From NCBI GenBank assembly GCA_964188305.1, contig OZ076892.1: DNA of 64,000 nt, one strand, 5' to 3'. Origin of the DNA: Podarcis bocagei (Eukaryota). The first letter of the stretch is position 1, and each line of letters begins with the position of its first letter. Made by a program: the position numbers and the translations under genes. The notes beneath the pieces are model-generated. The model was not told the origin of the DNA. It did no database searches and was given only the letters and a program-made list of their open reading frames with translations. Shown here piece after piece: positions 1,459-58,434 of this stretch.

Positions 1459-2518
1459 AAGCTAAGTCTACATTTACTGTTGCCACTGGAGTTCTTCATT
1501 TATTTTATTATTTTGTGGGTATTTAGAATGCGTTCATTCAATCAATCAACCGCAGAATGCCACTAGGATAAAAACCATGTGTCAGCAACATCTAAAATGC
1601 CTGGGCAAATCATATTATGCCATTGTGGTTGCTGGGATTTTTTCCTGGTCCAAAGTTTCGTTTGCTTAGCAGTGTCTGTGTTTGATGTATGTAAATAATT
1701 GTAGTTCTGCTTTCTTGAAACAACAACAAACATAATTAAAGCTCAATCTCTCGTCAAAATGGCAGGATGCTTTTGCTGGCTGCTGTGGACTCCTAGGCAG
1801 CTGGTAACATCTTAGCTCATCAACCACTTTCAACAAGGGAGAAGGCGCCTTTATGGTAAATAAGCGGTGAGCTGTCAGCCGGCTGGCAGTTTCCACCACT
1901 GAGCTGGCAAAGGAAAAGGCGAGCTGCATTTCACAGAGGTATCTTGTATGTTCAAGCGGGGGTGGGGGCGGGGTGTAGAAGAGGGTCCAGGTGCAAGCCA
2001 GAGCAATGAGAAGAGCAGGCCAGGAGGCAGAGCAAGATTCACAGAGGTGATGCCGTTGGAAAACGGATGCAGCGCCCATCTGTCCAGTTCTTATTTTGGA
2101 TGAAAAGAGAGTTCCTTGAAACCATCCCAACATTTCATTCAAAGATCAATCATCTTGAAATGCAGCCTCAATGGGGGATTTTAAAAAAAAAAACCGTCTA
2201 AGCAATACTGCAAGCAGTTCGGTAGTTTAGTTGGAAGAGGAGGCAGAAAGCGGTAAGGAAAGAGAAGCAAAAACAACAGGTTGTGCATGGGGGGGGGGAT
2301 ATTGAGGGTCCACTTCCATAGGTGCTATTCATTCACTGGGTCTTCAGATGCTGAGAGTACTAGAATACCTTCATAGCGACCTGAGTGTAGAGCGCTGCAC
2401 AAGTCTGCTATTTGTCTTGGTGGGTGCCTAGTTTCTGCCACATTTCACGTACAGCAAGCAGGAAGGCTATTATTTCATTTATTACCTGCCCTTCATTACA
2501 ATGCCCCATTCATCCAGA

Positions 2519-3316
2519 TATCAGGGACAGACTTGACGATGAGGAATGGTGGGAGGCTCCAGCCAGAGAATCCCCCTTAGGAAGTCTCAGAAGAGGAAGG
2601 CTTGGAGTCAGGGGAGACAGGTCAGAGAATGAAGTGGGGAGGCAGAAGGGTTGGATGCTGAGCAAGCAACAGGCTTGAGTGAGAGAGAGGAAGAAGAGGC
2701 AGAAAGCACTGCAGACACAGGACAGGGAGCTGAGAAAGAGGTGGGGGCTGAGGTTCCAACAGATTCACAGGAGCCTGCTGGTCCTACTGTATTCAGCTCC
2801 TCTCCTCCCTTGTCTCTAAGGACACAGAGGGCTTTGCAAGTAGCAGAGGAATGAGCACAGTCTCCCCACCCCACCGACGAAGCTTAGGACTGCAGGGAAG
2901 TGGGTGGCCCAGAACAGAGCCAGTGTGCTGTAGTGGTTAAGAGCGGTGGACTCGTAATCTGGTGAACCGGGTTCGTGTCTCCGCTCCTCCACATGCAGCT
3001 GCTGGGTGACCTTGGGCTAGTCACACTTTTCTGAAGTCTCTCAGCTGCACTCACCTCACAGAGTGTTTGTTGTGGTTGAGGGAAGGGAAAGGAAAGAAGA
3101 ATGTTAGCCACTTTGAGACCCCTTAAGGGGAGTGAAAGGCGGGATATCAAGTCCAAATTCTCCTCCTCCTCCTCCTCCTCCTCCTTCTTCTTCTTTACCA
3201 GGGGCCAGACTCTCTGTAGGTTTCTCTGTTTGTACTCTGTTTCATTGAACAAAGAATCAACTTTACTGCTCACCTCTGAGTTTCCATGCTGACCTGCAGC
3301 TGAACCAGCCCTAACA
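2519..3316 (+). mobile_element. Solo-LTR-like element carrying a SINE insertion
   Basis: Collinear similarity to 18861-19415 on the minus strand (shared ...ACAGATTCACAGGAGCCTGC...); TATCAGGG...CCCTAACA termini; TSD not clear. Confidence 0.65.
2916..3195 (+). mobile_element. tRNA-derived SINE (Squam2/Anolis SINE2-like)
   Basis: A box (gtagtggttaagagc) and B box (gggttcgtgtc), (TCC/TTC)n tail; near-identical copy at 14310-14568. Confidence 0.85.
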
Positions 3317-11782: not shown

Positions 11783-12950
11783 ACTCCACCCATCTGGCTG
11801 GGTTGCCCCAGCCACTGAAAAGCAAGATAAAAGCAAAGAGGGCTGGTGAATTAATATCCCTTATTAGTGCAAGATCTGTGAAGCTAAATATGTTTCTGGA
11901 TCTCACTACTCAAAAACACACAGGCAGTGGCAGTGGAAATCAAAGAAGTCATCTGCAGATTCAACAGTAATTAGGGGACAGGGTTCTCTACAAGTCTAGC
12001 ATTCCTCCTGGCCAGCACCATAAGTTATACAAAAGAACCAAATACAGGCTAAGTAGGCATCTATGCACACATTATTCAAATCAGAGAATGGTAGGTTTTC
12101 AGAAAAAATGAGAGAATAGAATTGTCTTTGTAACTTGGTTTTTTTAATCATCAACACGGCTACCTGGGCACAGGATTCTATTTTTTCGGTCTTCAGGAGA
12201 CGGAGCATAAACAAATGTACCGCTCTCCATTTGCAAGCTCTTGCATCCTCTCCCCCCCCCCTTTATTCCATTTGTCTGGCTACACACAGCAGCACATGGG
12301 GCAGGCATGGCGGGGGGGAACTGTCACAAACCCTCAGCCACGTGATTCTAAAATTAGCATCCTCAGCTACTGCAAAGCCTTGTGGAGTCTGCAAAGGCCA
12401 GCAGAAAAAAAAATTCTGGAGCTTTGTCTTGAATTGAATAATGGCAGAGTAGAGTCTCCAGACTGTATCCCTTCGGGCACCAAAAGCAGAACTCTTTCCA
12501 AAAAAAGGGCTTTATGATGTGAATCTCTGGTTGGTTGCTAACTTCTTCCCAAATGGTGTTTGCCACTTTCTTCTGCAAAGGATTTGACAGCTCCCAGAGC
12601 TGGAATTGGATGAAACTTTGTTGTTAGAAGAGAAGTCCATCTTGAGCCCAACATGAATCAGGAGCAGAAGGAGACAGGCCACATAGAAGGTACTCTTGGA
12701 ATCATACCCCGGAATTGGAAGACCCATTATGTCCCAGCTGGACTCTCTCTCCAACTCTGGAATCATTTGAAGGCATGGTGTCTCCAAATGGATCCTTGGT
12801 GTTTGGCAGCGATTGGGAAGAAATTTAATTCATTCCACTTTTAAAGGCAATCCTACCTAATAAACACTTTCAAAAAACAATATGTGAACCAAAACACAGC
12901 CATCCTTCCAATTTTGCAATGCAGTTTTCCAGTCAGGTAATGCCTACAAA

Positions 12951-13300
12951 GGGACGTGGGTGGCGCTGTGGGTTAAACCACAGAGCCTAGGATTTGCCAA
13001 TCAGAAGGTCAGCAGTTCGAATCCCTGCGACGGGGTGAGCTCCCATTGCTCGGTCCCTACTCCTGCCAACCTAGCAGTTCAAAAGCACATCAAAGTGCAA
13101 GTAGATAAATAGATACTGCTCTGGCAGGAAGGTAAACAGAATTTCCGTGCGCTGCTCTGGTTTGCCAGAAGCGGCTTAGTCATGCTGGCCACATGACCCG
13201 GAAGCTGTACGCCGGCTCCCAATAAAGCGAGATGAGCGCCGCAACCCCAGAATCGGCCACGACTGGACCTAATGGTCAGGGGTCCCTTTACCGTTACCTT
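12951..13300 (+). mobile_element. Sauria SINE (Squam1), full length
   Basis: gggacgtgggtggcgctgtgggttaaacc head, (TTTACC)-type tail; 13-bp TSD TAATGCCTACAAA; inserted in a hAT MITE. Confidence 0.92.
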
Positions 13301-14216
13301 TAATGCCTACAAATACATGTACACTAGGGTAAAATATGCATTAAAATGAATATATTAGTAAAAATAACATACAAATTGCATTAGGGAAAATTGGTTCTCA
13401 GAAATTCATGTAATAGGCAAAATTGCATAGAAAATGCATACAGTAGATGAAATACTAATGAAGTCTCATAAGCACTTTTTCTTTTAAAAATATTGCAAAG
13501 TTATATGGAAATGTGTAGAAGTGGATTTAAGGATGGAAAAATGAGGAAACTGAGGGAAACCGAAACTGACAGTTTCCTCCATTCCTAGTGTGTGGCAATT
13601 ATATTTTTATACATGGCCCTACTCTTCTGCGATGGAAAACCGAAAGCAAATGAGGCATCCCATTTATTGGGCCAACTAATGTTTAAAATGCTGGGGGCTA
13701 CCTTATGAGTCCCACAGAGAGAAGAGAAAGCAAGGATATGGCAAAGAGATAGTTAGTAGGGGGATAAAATGAGCTGGTTCAGAGAACAGAGATAAATCTT
13801 GCCCCAAGCAGCAGCTCAGCAAAGAATAAGGGAAAGAAAGCTTAAATTGCAAAGTATCAAACGGTAAAAATTAACAAGTGTGCCCAATGACCCCATGCAA
13901 GACCAATCATTTGGGGTGACGGACTTCCGATTACAGCGGCACAGCGTGGTCTGAGACGTGCAGGCTTCTGTGATCCGACACCCAGGTGTTATGCTGGGAA
14001 GAACAGCTCTTACGTAACCACCCCTGGAACACAAACCTGCAGTCAGCTGAAAAGGCAGCAGCTGCCACAGCCTCCTGGGAGGGGATGCTTTGCCAGGAGC
14101 AAAGGAACACCGTGCAAAGCTACACCTGACACACACCACAACAATGTGACTAAAAACTGGGGTTTGCAAGTACTGATCTGCTGGCCGATATCTGTCTGCA
14201 GGGCTAGTTTTCTGCA

Positions 14217-15430: not shown

Positions 15431-15519
15431 GAATCATAGAATCACCAAGAATCACAGAATTATAGAATTGTAAGGGCCACATGGATCATTTAGTCCAATC
15501 CCCTGCAATACAGGAATAT
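15431..15519 (-). mobile_element. CR1-type 3' tail fragment
   Basis: Degenerate (TCATAGAA)n followed by tagtccaatcccctgcaatacaggaa. Confidence 0.7.
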
Positions 15520-15593
15520 TTCATCCATGCTGATAATTTTTCATGGGGAGGGATTGACCAAAAAAACCCCAAACTGTGGCAGGTGATGTGGAG

Positions 15594-17777
15594 GACTCAA
15601 TTTCTTGACTTTAAGAAAGCCGACTTCATAAAACTTAGGGAAGTGCTGGGTGAGATCCCATGGACAGCAATACTAAAAGGAAAGGGAGTTCATGATGGCT
15701 GGGAGTTTGTTAAGAGGGAGATAGTAAAAGCACAACGTCAGGCAATACCAATGAGACGGAAACATGGAAGGTGCCTAAAGAAGCCAGGGTGGCTATCTAA
15801 AGAACTTTTAACTGAATTAAGATTAAAAAAGGATGTGTACAAAAAATGGAAAAGGGGGGAAACCACCAAAGAGGAATTCAAACAAATAGCCAGCACGTGT
15901 AGACACAAAGTCAGAAAAGCTAAAGCACAGAATGAACTCAGGCTTGCTAGAGAGGTTAAAAGCAACAAAAAAGGCTTTTATGGGTATCTTCGTAGCAAAA
16001 GGAAGAACAAAGAAACAGTGGGGTCACTCAGAGGAGAAGATGGTGAAATGCAAACAGGGGACACAGAAAGGGCTGAACTCCTCAATGCCTTCTTTGCCTC
16101 AGTCTTCTCCGATAAAGAAAACAATGCCCGACCTGAAGAATTTGGAGCAAATGATTCACCAAACAAACACAGCCCAGAATAACTAAGGAGACAGTACAAG
16201 AATATTTGGCTAGTTTAGATGTATTCAAGTCTCCAGGGCCAGATGAACTGCATCCAAGAGTATTAAAAGAACTGGCAAATGTGATCTCAGAACCACTGGC
16301 AGTCATCTTCGAGAAATCCTGGAGAACAGGCGAAGTCCCGGCAGACTGGAGGAGGGCAAATGTTGTCCCTATTTTCAAAAAGGGGAAAAGAGAGGACCCA
16401 AATAATTACCGCCCAATCAGTCTGACATCAATAGCAGGGAAGATTCTGGAGCAGATCATTAAGCAAACAGTCTGTGAGCACCTAGAAAGGAATGCTGTGA
16501 TCACCAATAGTCAGCATGGATTTCTGAAAAATAAGTCATGTCAGACTAACCTGATCTCATTTTTTGACAGAATTACAAGCCTGGTAGATGAAGGGAACTC
16601 AGTGGATATAGCCTACCTTGATTTCAGTAAGGCATTTGACAAGGTGCCCCATGATATTCTTGTAAAGAAGCTGGTAAAATGCGGTCTTGACTCTGCTACC
16701 ACTCAGTGGATTTGTAACTGGCTGACTGACCGAACCCAAAGGGTGCTCATCAATGGTTCCTCTTCATCCTGGAGAAGAGTGACTAGTGGGGTGCCACAGG
16801 GTTCTGTCTTGGGCCCGGTCTTATTTAACATCTTTATCAACGACTTGGATGATGGACTCAAGGGCATCCTGATCAAATTTGCAGATGACACCAAACTGGG
16901 AGGGGTGGCTAACACCCCAGAGGACAGGATCACACTTCAAAACGACCTTGACAGATTAGAGAACTGGGCAAAAACAAACAAAATGAATTTTAACAGGGAG
17001 AAATGTAAAGTATTGCACTTGGGCAAAAAAAATGAGAGGCACAAATACAAGATGGGTGACACCTGGCTTGAGAGCAGTACATGTGAAAAGGATCTAGGAG
17101 TCTTGGTTGACCACAAACTTGACATGAGCCAACAGTGTGACGCGGCAGCTAAAAAAGCCAATGCAATTCTGGGCTGCATCAATAGGAGTATAGCATCTAG
17201 ATCAAGGGAAGTAATAGTGCCACTGTATTCTGCTCTGGTCAGACCACACCTGGAGTACTGTGTCCAGTTCTGGGCACCACAATTCAAGAAGGACACTGAC
17301 AAACTGGAACGTGTCCAGAGGAGGGCAACCAAAATGGTCAAAGGCCTGGAAACGATGCCTTATGAGGAACGGCTAAGGGAGCTGGGCATGTTTAGCCTGG
17401 AGAAGAGGAGGTTAAGGGGTGATATGATAGCCATGTTCAAATATATAAAAGGATGTCACATAGAGGAGGGAGAAAGGTTGTTTTCTGCTGCTCCAGAGAA
17501 GCGGACACGGAGCAATGGATCCAAACTACAAGAAAGAAGATTCCACCTAAACATTAGGAAGAACTTCCTGACAGTAAGAGCTGTTCGACAGTGGAATTTG
17601 CTGCCAAGGAGTGTGGTGGAGTCTCCTACTTTGGAGGTCTTTAAGCAGAGGCTTGACAACCATATGTCAGGAGTGCTCTGATGGTGTTTCCTGCTTGGCA
17701 GGGGGTTGGACTCGATGGCCCTTGTGGTCTCTTCCAACTCTATGATTCTATGATTCTATGATTCTATGATTCTATGA
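15594..17777 (+). mobile_element. CR1 LINE, 5'-truncated, young
   Basis: ORF2 motifs ([36 protein letters not shown]), 3' UTR and (TTCTATGA)n tail; one frameshift near 16160; inserted in a hAT MITE. Confidence 0.97.
16206..17681 (+). CDS. CR1 ORF2 reverse transcriptase domain (partial; no APE endonuclease; upstream part in another frame at about 15595-16160)
   Basis: 491-aa open frame with the non-LTR RT motifs [23 protein letters not shown] and LGV. Confidence 0.9.
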
Positions 17778-18860: not shown

Positions 18861-19415
18861 TGTCGGGGCTGGTTCAGTCGACGGTCAGCACAGAGACTCA
18901 GAGATGAGTGGTAAAGCTGTTTCTTTATTCAAGAAAACAGAATACAAACAGACAAACCTATTGGCAAGACTGGCTCCTGATAAAGCAGTTACCAAAATGG
19001 ACTATCAGTGCCTCCCACTTCCACCTAAGTCTTCTTTCCGGCTGCTTGTCTTCTCAACCATCTTAAACTCCACTGGTGAGGGCCCCCACAGCACTCTCGG
19101 TACAAAGCTCTCTGTGCCCTTGGAGACAAGGGAGGAGGAGAGCTGAATACAATAGGACCGGCAGGCTCCTGTGAATCTGTAGCAGCCTCAATGCTCACCT
19201 TCTCCTCAACTGCCTGTCCTGCATCTGCCATGCTTTCTGACTTTTTTCCCTCTCTCCCACTCAAGGCTTTTGCTTGCTCAGCAACCAACCATCCTCTGAC
19301 CTGTCTTCTGTGTCCCACCACCACTCCCCTGACTTCCTTTTCTGAGGCTTCCCTAGCCTAGGGGGTTCTGGCTGGAGCCTCCCACAATTCCTCATCATCA
19401 AGCCAGTCCCTGATA
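18861..19415 (-). mobile_element. Solo-LTR-like element
   Basis: Same family as 2519-3316; terminal inverted TGTCGGG...CCCTGATA; AATAAA on the minus strand. Confidence 0.65.
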
Positions 19416-19757
19416 TCAGGATTAATGGGGCAGTGCCCCATCAAACTCAGTCTGCCTTCAGACAGCCCCCATCTTCCAGCCTTCTTACTTAAAATCAGAC
19501 AGCTTCCTCCTCCTCTTTAGTCTCAATTTTCCACTTATAGCATTCAGCAGGGAAGGGGATGATAATGTTGTTGTTGTTGTTGTCACATTTTTGCACACAT
19601 GTGCCTCAAAGTGATTTACATAGTAAACTAAAAGATCAGATTCCCAGATAAAAACAGCAATACCCAAAAACTAAAAGGCTCACTCAACAATATTTTTGAA
19701 AGGGGCAAGTCCTACTCATGCCACTTAAAAGACGGGGGGGTGTCAGTTGGCTCTGCC

Positions 19758-20090
19758 ATTCCTCTGGCTCTGGCTTGCAACAGACTTTTAAAGAAGCAGT
19801 TTTTCCATCGAGCTCTAAAAGTGATGAAGATGAAGCCAGACAAGGATGCAAAGAAAGAAAAGGAAAAAGAGAAAGGAAAGATTGAAAGTGGAAAAGAAGA
19901 TGAGAAAAAGAGCAAAAAAGATGGAGGAAAGGAAGAAAAAGCTAAAAAGGAGAAAGAGAAGGAAAAGAAGAAGGATGGTGAGAAAGAAGGCAGCAAAAAG
20001 GATGAGACTCCTGGCACACCTAAGAAGGAGACAAAGAGAAAATTCAAACTTGAACCTCATGAAGATCAGGTATTCCTCTGGCTCTGGCTT
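19758..20090 (+). repeat. 19-bp target-site duplication around the SEC62 fragment (19758-19776 and 20072-20090)
   Basis: Identical ATTCCTCTGGCTCTGGCTT on both sides. Confidence 0.95.
19777..20071 (+). pseudogene. SEC62: Processed internal fragment of SEC62 mRNA (tailless retrocopy)
   Basis: Translates CNRLLKKQFFHRALKVMKMK...KKDGEKEGSKKDETPGTPKKETKRKFKLEPHEDQVFL, recognisable as vertebrate Sec62; no introns; flanked by the 19-bp direct repeat ATTCCTCTGGCTCTGGCTT. Confidence 0.92.
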
Positions 20091-20664
20091 CACCTACTGT
20101 TTCACCCCACCAGTCCTGGTGGGCACCAGTCACCAATGACACCAGCCAACAGATATGTCAGAGTTTCATTGGGGAAGGTGGCAGGAATACAATGGTTTGA
20201 TGCACTATACGTCACCATCTCCCAAAGCTGGTGCTTGGGAGAAGTCAGTGAGGCCAACGTAGATGTCAGCCCTGGGACAAAGTTAGTGAGTAGAAAAGAG
20301 AAATGACAATGTACAGCAAGGATCAATCATATGCATCAAAAACAGTAATCTATTACCTGCAGCGTTCACCAAGTCAGATGAAACTGGAAAACTGACGGGG
20401 ATGAGGGAGAGAGAAATGGCAAATTTTTTTTTGCTTAGCCCATAATTAGTCATTAAGCATCCTCTGCTGCACATTAATCTCACAGACAGCCACAGATGCA
20501 GCTTCTATGCCACTGACTAATTTTCCATTCACTGGATAGAGGTTCCTTTCTCCCGTGTTAAAGGCCCCCAGCAATGCCATTTCCACGGTGGGCCTTGGAA
20601 TTACTCAACGTATGAACTGAAGATCTAAAATTTCTGGGTCTTCATTTCACACACAAATTAGAAC

Positions 20665-22375: not shown

Positions 22376-23557
22376 TTTCGTAGATTTTCACGGGTACAGG
22401 AATGCAGGTTTTGGTGTCTTCGGGTGTCTTCCCGTGTAAGAGTTGGGGTGTCTAGGCGACGTTTCGACGAGGTCTCACTCGTCATCTTCAGGCTGGTGCT
22501 TTCGGCTTCTTGTTACTGGAACAGAGCAGGATCTCAGTGTTTGAGTTCCTATAAATACTGTTGAGGGGGTGTGGTGTATAGCCTCCAACGTTCTGGGCAG
22601 AGAGGAAGTTCCCAGGTTAGTGTGTCTTTTCTTCTTTTGTTCATTAATTACTTGAGGGATATCTTGAGTGATTTCTTGAGTGATATTCTGAGTACCACTT
22701 AGGAGGGTCATTAGGTGTGGATTAGTTGCTAAAGCTTTCGTGTCTTGACCTCTTGAGCTTGTAAAGAGTTTTTTCTGAGAAGATGGCTGTACTTCACTTA
22801 GTTGTGCTCTGGCTTGGCTTCGTGTATAGGGGCGAGCTGTGGTTTTGTGCCCTGTGCCAGCCAGATCTGTGTAAGGATTGCAGGGGGGTGCAGCATCCGG
22901 AGGTGCCACTATGGTTTGGCTACTGGATGGTGTCTGTAATTTATCTGTGGAGAGGGTCTGGGTTTGGGTCTGGTGTGGTTGATTGGAGATGGCGTTCTGT
23001 GTGCCTCTGGTTCTGGTGTCGGTTTTTGTGGGGAGGGCTATTTTCCAGATGTCTGGCAGGCGGGACGTATCGTCACGCTTGTTCATGTTGTGAGGGTGTT
23101 TCTCTATCTCGATGGCTTCCATGATTATTCTCTTGTGGTGGTGTTCCGTGTTAAAGAGCAATTTGGAATCTGAAAAATTAATTTCGTGTCCTGTTTCTTT
23201 CATGTGTTGGTAAAGAGAGGAAGTTTTTTCTTCTTTTTTGACGGCATTCTTGTGTTCTGCGATACGTGCATTTATTCGTCTGTTTGTTTGTCCAATGTAC
23301 GTGGCTGGGCAGACTTTGCAGGGTATTTCATAGACCCCTTGGTTTTCTAACTGGATTTTATCTTTGGGGTTTCTGAGGATATTGGCTATTTTTTGGTTGG
23401 TGCAAAAGGCTGTTTTGATATTGTGTTTGTGGAGGATTTTGCTAATTTTATCTGTAGTGCCCTTGATATAAGGAAGGAGGGCCATGCCATTGTTTTCTTC
23501 TGTGTCTTGGTTTTTGGGGGGTGTTTCTTTTTGGATTAGCTTCGTAACCCTGTTTTG
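22374..23557 (-). mobile_element. Penelope-like element, 5'-truncated, left (inverted) arm
   Basis: Reverse complement of 23589-24744, plus about 29 extra 3' bases; GIY-YIG ORF at 22475-23485. Confidence 0.95.
22458..22491 (-). ncRNA. Minimal hammerhead ribozyme, mirror copy
   Basis: Exact reverse complement of 24655-24688. Confidence 0.8.
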
Positions 23558-23579
23558 TTACGAAGCTAATCCCTGTTTT

Positions 23580-24671
23580 GGATACCAGCAAAACAGGGTT
23601 ACGAAGCTAATCCAAAAAGAAACACCCCCCAAAAACCAAGACACAGAAGAAAACAATGGCATGGCCCTCCTTCCTTATATCAAGGGCACTACAGATAAAA
23701 TTAGCAAAATCCTCCACAAACACAATATCAAAACAGCCTTTTGCACCAACCAAAAAATAGCCAATATCCTCAGAAACCCCAAAGATAAAATCCAGTTAGA
23801 AAACCAAGGGGTCTATGAAATACCCTGCAAAGTCTGCCCAGCCACGTACATTGGACAAACAAACAGACGAATAAATGCACGTATCGCAGAACACAAGAAT
23901 GCCGTCAAAAAAGAAGAAAAAACTTCCTCTCTTTACCAACACATGAAAGAAACAGGACACGAAATTAATTTTTCAGATTCCAAATTGCTCTTTAACACGG
24001 AACACCACCACAAGAGAATAATCATGGAAGCCATCGAGATAGAGAAACACCCTCACAACATGAACAAGCGTGACGATACGTCCCGCCTGCCAGACATCTG
24101 GAAAATAGCCCTCCCCACAAAAACCGACACCAGAACCAGAGGCACACAGAACGCCATCTCCAATCAACCACACCAGACCCAAACCCAGACCCTCTCCACA
24201 GATAAATTACAGACACCATCCAGTAGCCAAACCATAGTGGCACCTCCGGATGCTGCACCCCCCTGCAATCCTTACACAGATCTGGCTGGCACAGGGCACA
24301 AAACCACAGCTCGCCCCTATACACGAAGCCAAGCCAGAGCACAACTAAGTGAAGTACAGCCATCTTCTCAGAAAAAACTCTTTACAAGCTCAAGAGGTCA
24401 AGACACGAAAGCTTTAGCAACTAATCCACACCTAATGACCCTCCTAAGTGGTACTCAGAATATCACTCAAGAAATCACTCAAGATATCCCTCAAGTAATT
24501 AATGAACAAAAGAAGAAAAGACACACTAACCTGGGAACTTCCTCTCTGCCCAGAACGTTGGAGGCTATACACCACACCCCCTCAACAGTATTTATAGGAA
24601 CTCAAACACTGAGATCCTGCTCTGTTCCAGTAACAAGAAGCCGAAAGCACCAGCCTGAAGATGACGAGTGA
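23580..24671 (+). CDS. Penelope ORF 3' part: linker, GIY-YIG endonuclease and low-complexity extension (no RT core)
   Basis: GVYEIPCKVCPATYIGQTNRRINARIAEH...HMKETGH...EAIEIEKH..NMNKRDD; identical translation on the minus strand at 22475-23485. Confidence 0.85.
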   Translation, partial: GYQQNRVTKLIQKETPPKNQDTEENNGMALLPYIKGTTDKISKILHKHNIKTAFCTNQKIANILRNPKDKIQLENQGVYEIPCKVCPATYIGQTNRRINARIAEHKNAVKKEEKTSSLYQHMKETGHEINFSDSKLLFNTEHHHKRIIMEAIEIEKHPHNMNKRDDTSRLPDIWKIALPTKTDTRTRGTQNAISNQPHQTQTQTLSTDKLQTPSSSQTIVAPPDAAPPCNPYTDLAGTGHKTTARPYTRSQARAQLSEVQPSSQKKLFTSSRGQDTKALATNPHLMTLLSGTQNITQEITQDIPQVINEQKKKRHTNLGTSSLPRTLEAIHHTPSTVFIGTQTLRSCSVPVTRSRKHQPEDDE

Positions 24672-32600: not shown

Positions 32601-32626
32601 TCTGTAGGTCAGCAGCAAGGTTAGTA

Positions 32627-32965
32627 AAGGTAAAGGGACCCCTGGCCATTAGGTCCAGTCGTGGACGACTCTGGGGTTGCGGCACACATCTCGCTTTATT
32701 GGCCAAGGGAGCTTCCAGGTCATGTGGCCAGCATGACTAAGCCATTTCTGGTGAACCAGAGCAGCACATGGCAACGCCGTTTACCTTCCCGCTGGAGTGG
32801 TACCTATTAATCTACTTGCACTTTGATGTACTTTCAAACTGCTAGATTGGCAGGAGTAGGGACCAAACAACAGGAGCTCACCCCGTCGCAGGGAATCGAA
32901 CCGCCAACCTTCTGATCGGCAAACCCTAGGCTCTGTGGTTTAACCCACAGCGCCACCCGCGTCCC
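32627..32965 (-). mobile_element. Sauria SINE
   Basis: Full length; 13-bp TSD AGCAAGGTTAGTA. Confidence 0.92.
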
Positions 32966-33174
32966 TAGCAAGGTTAGTACACCAACCTAAATGATGCGCA
33001 GCATATTGCCTAGACTAGAGAAATTATTTTACATGGTGAATGTGACTCCTCTATCAAAAAAAAATTGGGAAGCTGTGTGCTCCGCCATGCATCCAGATGC
33101 CTCTTAAGATATTGTTGGCAAACTCTGCACAGTGGTTCCTGAGATCAATGAGCAGGTTCTTGTTTGAATACAGC

Positions 33175-56285: not shown

Positions 56286-57156
56286 TAACTTGAGCCCAAT
56301 GATTTCAATGCATCTACTCTGAGCAGGACTTAGTTGGATACAACCCCAAGTTTTGCACCTCAGATTTTGAACCTTGCACGCTGCTCCACTCCCTAGTGAT
56401 CAATGCCACATTGTATTTCATTGCCAGACGTGTGTGGTGTATTTTAAAAAAAAGAAAAGAAACAACAGCAAAAACAATGCAATTCATTGTCACAGAGACT
56501 TTAATTTGCTAAGCACAGATGGATATTGATTTTCCATCATAAGCTATTTAGAAGCAAATTGTTGCAAGCTTCAACAGCAACCCCTCCATCTTTCAAGTTG
56601 GTTACAGATAAATTACACACGCACATATATTTTGAAAAGCAGCAATAACCATAAGGCGTGTGATTAAAAAGGCAGCCTGTGAACTAACCCTCAGTAGCAT
56701 TCTGATACTCTCGGCTTCATTTAACATACGGCGATTAAAAAGCCCCACTTCCCAGAGAGAAAACACATCAGCAGTACATTAGAGAGCCTGATTTGCACAA
56801 GCAGCAGGTCACATGGCACTATAGCTATTTCTGGACCGTACCACATTAAGAGTAGAGCTCAGCTGAAATTTCTCAGAAGTTTTTTTCTGTAATTTTTCTT
56901 TCTCTCCCCCACCTCCGCCCATTACCCTCAGAAAAAAAGTCATTTTCCAGAATTATCTGCATGTTCAACCTCTAGCATCTCTACATAGGACTGGGAGAGA
57001 AACTCCTGTCTGGAGAGTCACTGTCAGTCAACGTGGAGTGTCCTGAGGTAGATGAAGCAATGGTCCAACTTGACATAAGACTGTTTGCACACAGTTCTAA
57101 TAAGACCAGAGCTAAGGGAGTTATAGGACTGGAACACTTCCCCATAAACAAAACTA

Positions 57157-57506
57157 AAGGTAAAGGGACCCCTGACCATTAGGTCCAGTCGTGGCCGACT
57201 CTGGGGCTGTGGCACTCATCTCGCTTTATTGGCCGAGGGAGCCAGCGTACAGCTTCCGGGTCATGTGGCCAGCATGACTAAGCTGCTTCTGGCGAACCAG
57301 AGCAGCACACGGAAACGCCGTTTACCTTCCCGCCGGAGCGGTACCTATTTATCTACTTGCACTTTGATGTGCTTTCAAACTGCTAGGTTGGCAGGAGCAG
57401 GGACTGAGCAACAGGAGCTCACCCTGTCGCGGGGATTCTAACCGCTGACCTTCTGATAGGCAAGTCCTAGGCTCTGTGGTTTAACCCACAGCGCCACCCA
57501 CATCCC
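57157..57506 (-). mobile_element. Sauria SINE
   Basis: Full length; 13-bp TSD ATAAACAAAACTA. Confidence 0.93.
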
Positions 57507-58434
57507 TATAAACAAAACTAGTTGCCACCTATTTCAGGTCCTAGCAATAACTAAAATCCCTAAACAACTTAAAGTTTGGCAAAGATTATTGGGTAAATTC
57601 ATTCATAGGGGAAAGAAAGCTCAGGTATGCAGCATAATATTATATAATAATGGCAACAAGGGAGGTCTGGGAGTGCCCCATTGGCTTACACATTCTAAAG
57701 GCATTCCAAGTCAGGAACTTGGTGTCTTTGATTCAAGATCCAGAAGGAAAACTGTGAATTGATATAAAATTGGAAGATCAGAAATTCAGGGTGTGGCCCT
57801 TTCTTGCTGTTGCCCCAAAATTAATTCGCAATGTGACAAAAAACCATTTTCACTTAGTACGTTGTTTGGCGAACAATATACAAGAAAGCCACTTCTCCGA
57901 TCTTCCTAATGATTCCACTTAGATATAGCCCAATGTTGGATGCAGCTGGAGATATGATGGACCAGGGTGGGTGGGAATAAGCAGATCTTTATAGAGGGCC
58001 ATTTTTATGTCAATGGCCCTCACAAGTCTAGACCAGGGTTGATTCCACCAGGATCAGCTGTGTGATTTGCTGGGGGGAGGCAATACAGGAATGGGTGGTT
58101 TGAAAGCAGCAACTCACAGATCCTAGTCTTTGCTCTTTCCACCCTTTCAGCTATGGGATAGCAATTATGAGGTAAGGTGGCACCTTTCAGAGGGGCAGTG
58201 TGACAGGGCAGCACAGAACTAGGCCTAGTTCTTACCAGGAGGAAGAGCATATTTGGGAGCTAGCTGGCTGGCTGGCTGATGGAAAGCGATTTTATGTAAT
58301 TGAAGAAGCAGATGTGGTTTTATGTCCACCCTGAAAGAAGCAGCTGTAGAAGAGAATAGCCTATGCTAATAAAAATAGAATTGGTCCTATAAAAAGGAAT
58401 TAGTTCCATGGGTGGCTAGTGGAGTCACCCGATG

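Follow-up and report, generated by a model that had tools for sequence, protein, structure and literature searches.

A very likely tailless retropseudogene of SEC62, made from an internal piece of spliced mRNA, in a lacertid lizard genome

Schmitz et al. are said to have dealt with tailless retropseudogenes in 2004. Such copies have been found only where relaxed L1 elements are active, and the green anole is among the species that have them (Noll et al. 2015, PMC5322556). In human, many mRNA forms truncated at the 5' or 3' end are among the tailless retropseudogenes flanked by target-site duplications (TSDs), and the consensus target of the tailless class is TT/WAAAAWW, where '/' marks the nick (PMC5322556). 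On the basis of green anole copies of 5S and U2, Noll et al. predicted that in lizards copying can begin within a host mRNA that offers no poly(A) tail (PMC5322556). Insertions of Bov-B carry the signature 'Tn-TA' (PMC13295347).

The locus presented here lies in a stretch of 64 kb from a lacertid lizard, which we refer to as the window. It is very likely a tailless retropseudogene: a dead copy, made from an internal part of the spliced SEC62 mRNA, that is truncated on either side and has no tail. As such it joins a class that is rare and already described, with cases known from human and green anole.

Exactly two copies of the 19-mer ATTCCTCTGGCTCTGGCTT were found in the window, with 0 mismatches between them (Table 1), and two 19-mer matches were obtained in 0 of 100 dinucleotide-preserving shuffles. 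Since the bases outside the two copies differ (CC versus GT on the left, G versus C on the right), the repeat is exactly 19 bp long. A scan of the window for perfect direct repeat pairs of at least 13 bp gave two pairs of 19 bp, and the 19-mer is the only pair of that length around a discrete insert that is not a repeat; the other pairs equal to or longer than 19 bp all lie within repeated elements. Between the copies are 295 bp (19777-20071), and the TSD is flush with both ends of this insert. No poly(A) tail is present in 19777-20071, where the insert end ...GAAGATCAGGT is not A-rich and abuts the TSD directly. The original prediction had described 295 bp of Sec62 sequence between two identical 19-mers and the lack of poly(A), and both descriptions hold. 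The insertion site reads GGCTCTGCC/ATTCCTCT with the nick at CC/ATTCCT, and upstream of it, at -11/-10, there is no more than TT.

Table 1. Positions in the window of the parts of the SEC62 insert, its target-site duplication and the Sauria SINEs
Feature	Position	Strand	Remarks
Left 19-bp TSD copy, ATTCCTCTGGCTCTGGCTT	19758..19776	+	last TT (19775-19776) also precedes GCAACAG in SEC62 mRNA
Last 7 nt (GCAACAG) of exon encoding ...VVDYCN(R)	19777..19783	+	7/7 match to L. agilis
Complete 217-nt exon, (R)LLKKQFFHRALKV...GSKK	19784..20000	+	L002 15018-15234, 9 mismatches, no gap
First 71 nt of following exon, DETPGTPKKETKRKFKLEPHEDQ then GT of Val codon	20001..20071	+	L002 21163-21236, 2 mismatches, 3-nt gap
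Right 19-bp TSD copy	20072..20090	+	begins with ATTCCT, similar to TTTTCT at the same place in the parent (4/6)
Sauria SINE	12951-13300 (with TSDs 12938-13313)	+	perfect 13-bp TSD from TA
Sauria SINE	32627-32966 (with TSDs 32614-32979)	-	perfect 13-bp TSD from TA
Sauria SINE	57157-57507 (with TSDs 57144-57520)	-	perfect 13-bp TSD from TA

The insert encodes the Lys/Glu-rich cytosolic region of SEC62. Its identity was searched for in 1.84 billion representative proteins, among which its translation matched the SEC62 protein of Pogona vitticeps with 94% identity across residues 99-198. This full-length match of 420 aa scores 223.6 bits with Pfam Sec62. The fragment by itself scores 14-21 bits with the same model, which is under the cut-off, and the identity was therefore settled via the full-length protein. 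When ten squamate SEC62 proteins were compared, the fragment was most similar to that of Lacerta agilis (97% identity), the one lacertid SEC62 in the protein clusters, and shared with it the Ala of KDAKKE, the GG of KDGGKE and the length of the Lys/Glu repeat. This closeness, as judged from the sequences, fits a lacertid host. A sequence search of PDB with the fragment gave no match.

An open frame had been pointed out at about 98 codons; the frame is indeed open, and the count is 97 codons from 19779 within the 295-bp insert. The open reading frame extends into the flanks, from 19740 to 20306 (188 aa), and an exact look-up of these 188 aa matched no called gene. The window yielded no identifiable host gene.

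We compared the window with the SEC62 gene loci of Pogona (L001) and L. agilis (L002) exon by exon, on the genomic loci and with no joined spliced model. In both species the stretch is encoded by three exons and not by one, and the copy combines the end of one exon, a complete exon and the beginning of the next (Table 1). The exon before the first junction ends in ...TTGCAACAG/GTAAGA in Pogona and in ...TTGCAACAG/GTAGGC in L. agilis. The end of this exon in L. agilis can also be given as ...GATTATTGCAACAG/GT, and in the copy its last 7 nt join directly to the next exon. Of the two introns absent from the insert, the first measures 1,166 nt in L. agilis and about 3.5 kb in Pogona, the second 5,928 nt and about 2.1 kb. 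In the third part of the copy, 71 nt correspond to 74 nt in the parent, which has one extra AAG. The exon junctions CNR/LLK and SKK/EETPG, which the original prediction had given for the human gene, are real in the lizard genes as CN(R)/LLK and KK/DETPG.

The parent gene can also be recognised in contigs from public runs. For organism A, which is the window's own species and covers the window best (share 0.92-0.93), the match of one contig begins at 19782, and that of another, with the extra AAG, begins at 19999. A 2.9-kb contig of organism C likewise matches only from 19782. Hence the parent-gene contigs of organisms A and C lose their match at the exon borders, in organism A at both 19782 and 19999. 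These two positions are the parent gene's two exon starts with an intron before each, and an intron-bearing parent is present in the window's own species. Since both introns are missing from the insert, and since the own-species contigs break at the exon borders, the template was spliced mRNA, as had been proposed. No other SEC62 exon was found in the 64 kb, where a tblastn search with L. agilis SEC62 finds only residues 97-196, and the locus is therefore not the functional SEC62 gene.

The left junction is bridged by contigs in organisms A, B and C. Contigs cross the right junction in organisms A and C, in the latter with 30 letters on the insert side, one under the 31-letter criterion. Because the junctions are present in three related species, the insertion predates their split. 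Over the insert, the depth of contigs equals what one single-copy locus and the parent give together, and the insert is therefore not a multi-copy element. An insertion common to the three species could also serve as a marker of their clade.

Substitutions specific to single species among organisms A, B and C are seen in the retrocopy at 19946 and 19992 and in the flank at 19741-19750; the A at 19946 is found in organism A only. These positions could be used for dating the insertion and for ordering the three species. The left flank contains an old interspersed repeat (19103-19435), of which an inverted copy with 78% identity lies at 2499-2836 (-), and the contig depth over this repeat is very high in all three species. 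Single-copy sequence was found in the 320 bp directly before the insert and in the right flank. In organism B, one contig joins 19561 to 20105 via 37 other letters, which look like the target before the insertion (...GGTTCTGCCTTAACTTCTGGCT). With a side of 28 nt it is uncertain, and it may represent a diverged paralogue of the target region; we set it aside as an empty paralogue, given that side of 28 nt and the absence of 170 nt of the left flank.

A stranded RNA run of organism C shows the parent type in every read over the insert (19808 C, 19882 C, 19925 C, 19931 A, 19946 G and 19990-92 AAG; the retrocopy has T at 19808 and at 19882), and 39 reads run 5' of 19775 into the upstream SEC62 exon as ...GTAGTTGATTA or ...GAGTCTGTAGTTGATTA. 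RNA specific for the retrocopy was not seen, and no read runs from the insert into the flanks in this one run of a sister species, which is about 2 reads deep near the right junction. The copy looks silent, which a single run of the sister species indicates rather than proves.

These observations bear on a reading in which the locus is a DNA-level duplication or an exapted exon, with the 97-codon frame kept by selection. The frame is open through the insert and continues for 188 aa, and the sole indel relative to the parent is 3 nt long and keeps the frame, as this reading would lead one to expect. Against it, the missing introns show an RNA source, the contig depth corresponds to one single-copy locus in addition to the parent, and the RNA reads of the sister-species run are all parent-type with none into the flanks at a depth of about 2 near the right junction. 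Furthermore, with about 11 substitutions in 295 nt relative to L. agilis, an open frame would be expected by chance and would be unremarkable. We regard duplication or exaptation as hardly conceivable. The retrocopy is dead and old, and there is no sign of function in the fragment.

The two junctions were examined for short overlaps between source and target. On the 5' side, the sequence of the mRNA is GATTA-TT-GCAACAG and that of the left TSD finishes with ...GGCTT, which gives a real microhomology of 2 nt (TT). A short 5' microhomology is usual for 5'-truncated insertions of the LINE type. At the 3' end, the parent genes read GTTTTTCT and the window reads GTATTCCT. In L. agilis and Pogona, CAGGT or CAAGT is followed by TTTTCTGGAT, whereas in the window CAGGT is followed by ATTCCTCTGG. 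Between the available parents (CAGGT/TTTTCT) and the window (CAGGT/ATTCCT), 4 of the 6 bases are identical, and the first base differs. If G-U pairs are allowed, 5 of the 6 bases could pair, with the base at the 3' terminus of the primer still mismatched. When ATTCCT was slid over the SEC62 exons of L. agilis, 4.1% of the positions matched as well (nominal p ~0.04), and 6/6 was reached nowhere. The run of the Sec62 frame into the right TSD as QVFL, which had been noted beforehand, is seen at the protein level; the 6-nt microhomology claimed together with it is not seen with the L. agilis and Pogona genes. Similarly, of what had been expected from the parent gene, high identity and missing introns were found, and the 3' junction sequence was not found in these two species (TTTTCT versus ATTCCT).

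Of the contigs of organism C, one stops at 20071 and its successor begins at 20042, which is 20072 minus 30. We take the Logan assembly graph to have been built with k=31. Such contig ends would be expected of a k=31 graph if the parent diverges from 20072. Annealing at the 3' junction may have helped, as the two sequences weakly suggest.

Short and imperfect microhomologies (2 nt at the 5' end and 4/6 at the 3' end), the lack of a tail, the truncation at both ends and the non-canonical nick site would all be in line with a repair patch. Here, a stray SEC62 cDNA or RNA fragment would have been end-joined into a chromosomal break, with neither a LINE endonuclease nor target priming. The perfect 19-bp duplication tells against this, as it needs a break staggered by 19 nt. 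A stagger of this kind is the usual product of first- and second-strand nicking by a LINE, and in L1 biology endonuclease-independent insertions are typically without TSDs. Staggered breaks can lead to TSDs of up to ~20 bp (PMC13295347). Overall, we consider a repair patch quite improbable.

Our preferred reading of the insert is target-primed reverse transcription (TPRT) that began within the mRNA, and a tailless internal fragment lying flush between 19-bp TSDs fits it. The mechanism (TPRT), a start by internal priming and not on a broken RNA template, and the kind of enzyme are all inferred. A LINE endonuclease/reverse transcriptase would have nicked the bottom strand at CC/ATTCC. From the freed 3' end (...GAGGAAT-3'), reverse transcription would then have set out within the mRNA at ...GAUCAGGU, a long way upstream of the poly(A) tail. 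The UUUUCU that comes next could have helped by imperfect pairing at most. Synthesis of cDNA would have stopped after 295 nt, the cDNA end would have been joined across the 19-nt staggered break via the 2-nt TT microhomology, and fill-in would have produced the 19-bp duplication. An internal start of TPRT was already part of the original prediction and agrees with the tailless flush fragment and its 19-bp TSDs; the accompanying claim of annealing to the nicked target is weakened by the mismatch at the primer terminus. We rejected twin priming in which the first cDNA was lost, as unparsimonious.

With regard to the enzyme, the literature points to a relaxed L1 as the most likely one, because according to Noll et al. 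tailless copies are found only with active L1s of this kind, and such copies have been found in the green anole. Three features count against our preferred reading. The nick CC/ATTCCT is unlike the L1 and tailless consensus TT/WAAAAWW, the end of the insert is not A-rich, and the 3' pairing with the available parents is imperfect, with a mismatch at the terminus of the primer. A scan of the window for insertions of the L1 type, with poly(A) and a TSD, gave none that was convincing. A maker other than a relaxed L1 we think unlikely. This might be one of the stringent LINEs of squamates (BovB/RTE, CR1 or L2), the target that it had nicked having happened to anneal to an internal host mRNA stretch that is not A-rich, or an L1 enzyme that primed at a nick that is not T-rich and with a mismatched terminus. 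If true, either would show that microhomology between target and RNA is by itself enough to draw host mRNAs into retroposition in reptiles.

The three Sauria SINE insertions of the window (Table 1) served for a comparison with BovB. They are 340-351 bp long, a T-run lies 10-13 nt upstream in two of the three, and the TA is found in the orientation of the element. Judged by sequence, their TSDs and T-runs match the published Bov-B signature 'Tn-TA' (PMC13295347), and the uniform length of 13 bp suggests a fixed stagger of the BovB enzyme. The original prediction had likened the SEC62 insertion to the BovB/Sauria insertions, and this likeness did not survive the comparison: the Sauria TSDs have 13 bp and begin at TA, whereas the SEC62 site has 19 bp, reads CC/AT and has its TT at -11/-10.

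A further reading, which the original prediction had brought up for RTE, is trans-mobilisation of the SEC62 mRNA by a stringent LINE (BovB/RTE, CR1 or L2) and not by L1. In its favour, the TSD begins with A and has a TT 10-11 nt upstream, a faint echo of the Bov-B 'Tn-TA' (PMC13295347). BovB-dependent Sauria SINEs are also present in the window, and an open reading frame for a LINE reverse transcriptase lies 2 kb upstream. However, the three Sauria insertions have 13-bp TSDs from TA and not 19 bp from AT after C, and the insert has neither a BovB-like 3' end nor a microsatellite; stringent LINEs recognise their own 3' ends (PMC5322556). Mobilisation by a stringent LINE is accordingly a very improbable reading to us, and a relaxed L1 remains the preferred enzyme.

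The upstream element consists of two adjacent non-LTR retrotransposon open reading frames of 233 and 491 aa at 15481-17681 (+), of which the second scores 125.5 bits with Pfam RVT_1. The frames lie 2 kb upstream of the SEC62 insert, and nothing ties them to it. Two further open reading frames, of 336 and 395 aa, are near-identical and lie head to head on opposite strands at 22475-24671; a Pfam search with both gave no match at E <=0.001.

The locus is a clean and well-bounded case in which lizard retrotransposition machinery can begin copying inside a host mRNA without poly(A). Its non-canonical nick together with the 19-bp TSD adds a data point on which squamate LINE makes such copies.

Compared with Bov-B LINE and Sauria SINE insertions (PMC13295347), the SEC62 copy is alike in having no poly(A), in its clean TSDs and in lying in the same genome. 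The 3' tail of such an element is its own or a microsatellite, whereas the SEC62 fragment has neither, and the ones in the window have 13-bp TSDs from TA downstream of a T-run, in contrast to 19 bp and CC/AT at the SEC62 site.

With a classical processed pseudogene made by L1, the copy shares the spliced mRNA template, a TSD in the range of 7-20 bp, 5' truncation with a short microhomology, and being dead on arrival. It differs in having neither a poly(A) tail nor a 3' UTR, and in a start within the coding region, with at least ~0.7 kb of coding sequence between this start and the stop codon.

The closest described class is that of the tailless retropseudogenes. Differences from it are the site CC/ATTCCT in place of TT/WAAAAWW, an endpoint that is not A-rich, a complementarity between target and source RNA of 4/6 when measured on the L. 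agilis and Pogona parents, the lacertid host and the multi-exon housekeeping mRNA as the source. In common are an insert derived from RNA, the lack of oligo(A), perfect TSDs, 5' truncation and a 3' end inside the source RNA, which in the SEC62 copy lies 71 nt into an internal coding exon.
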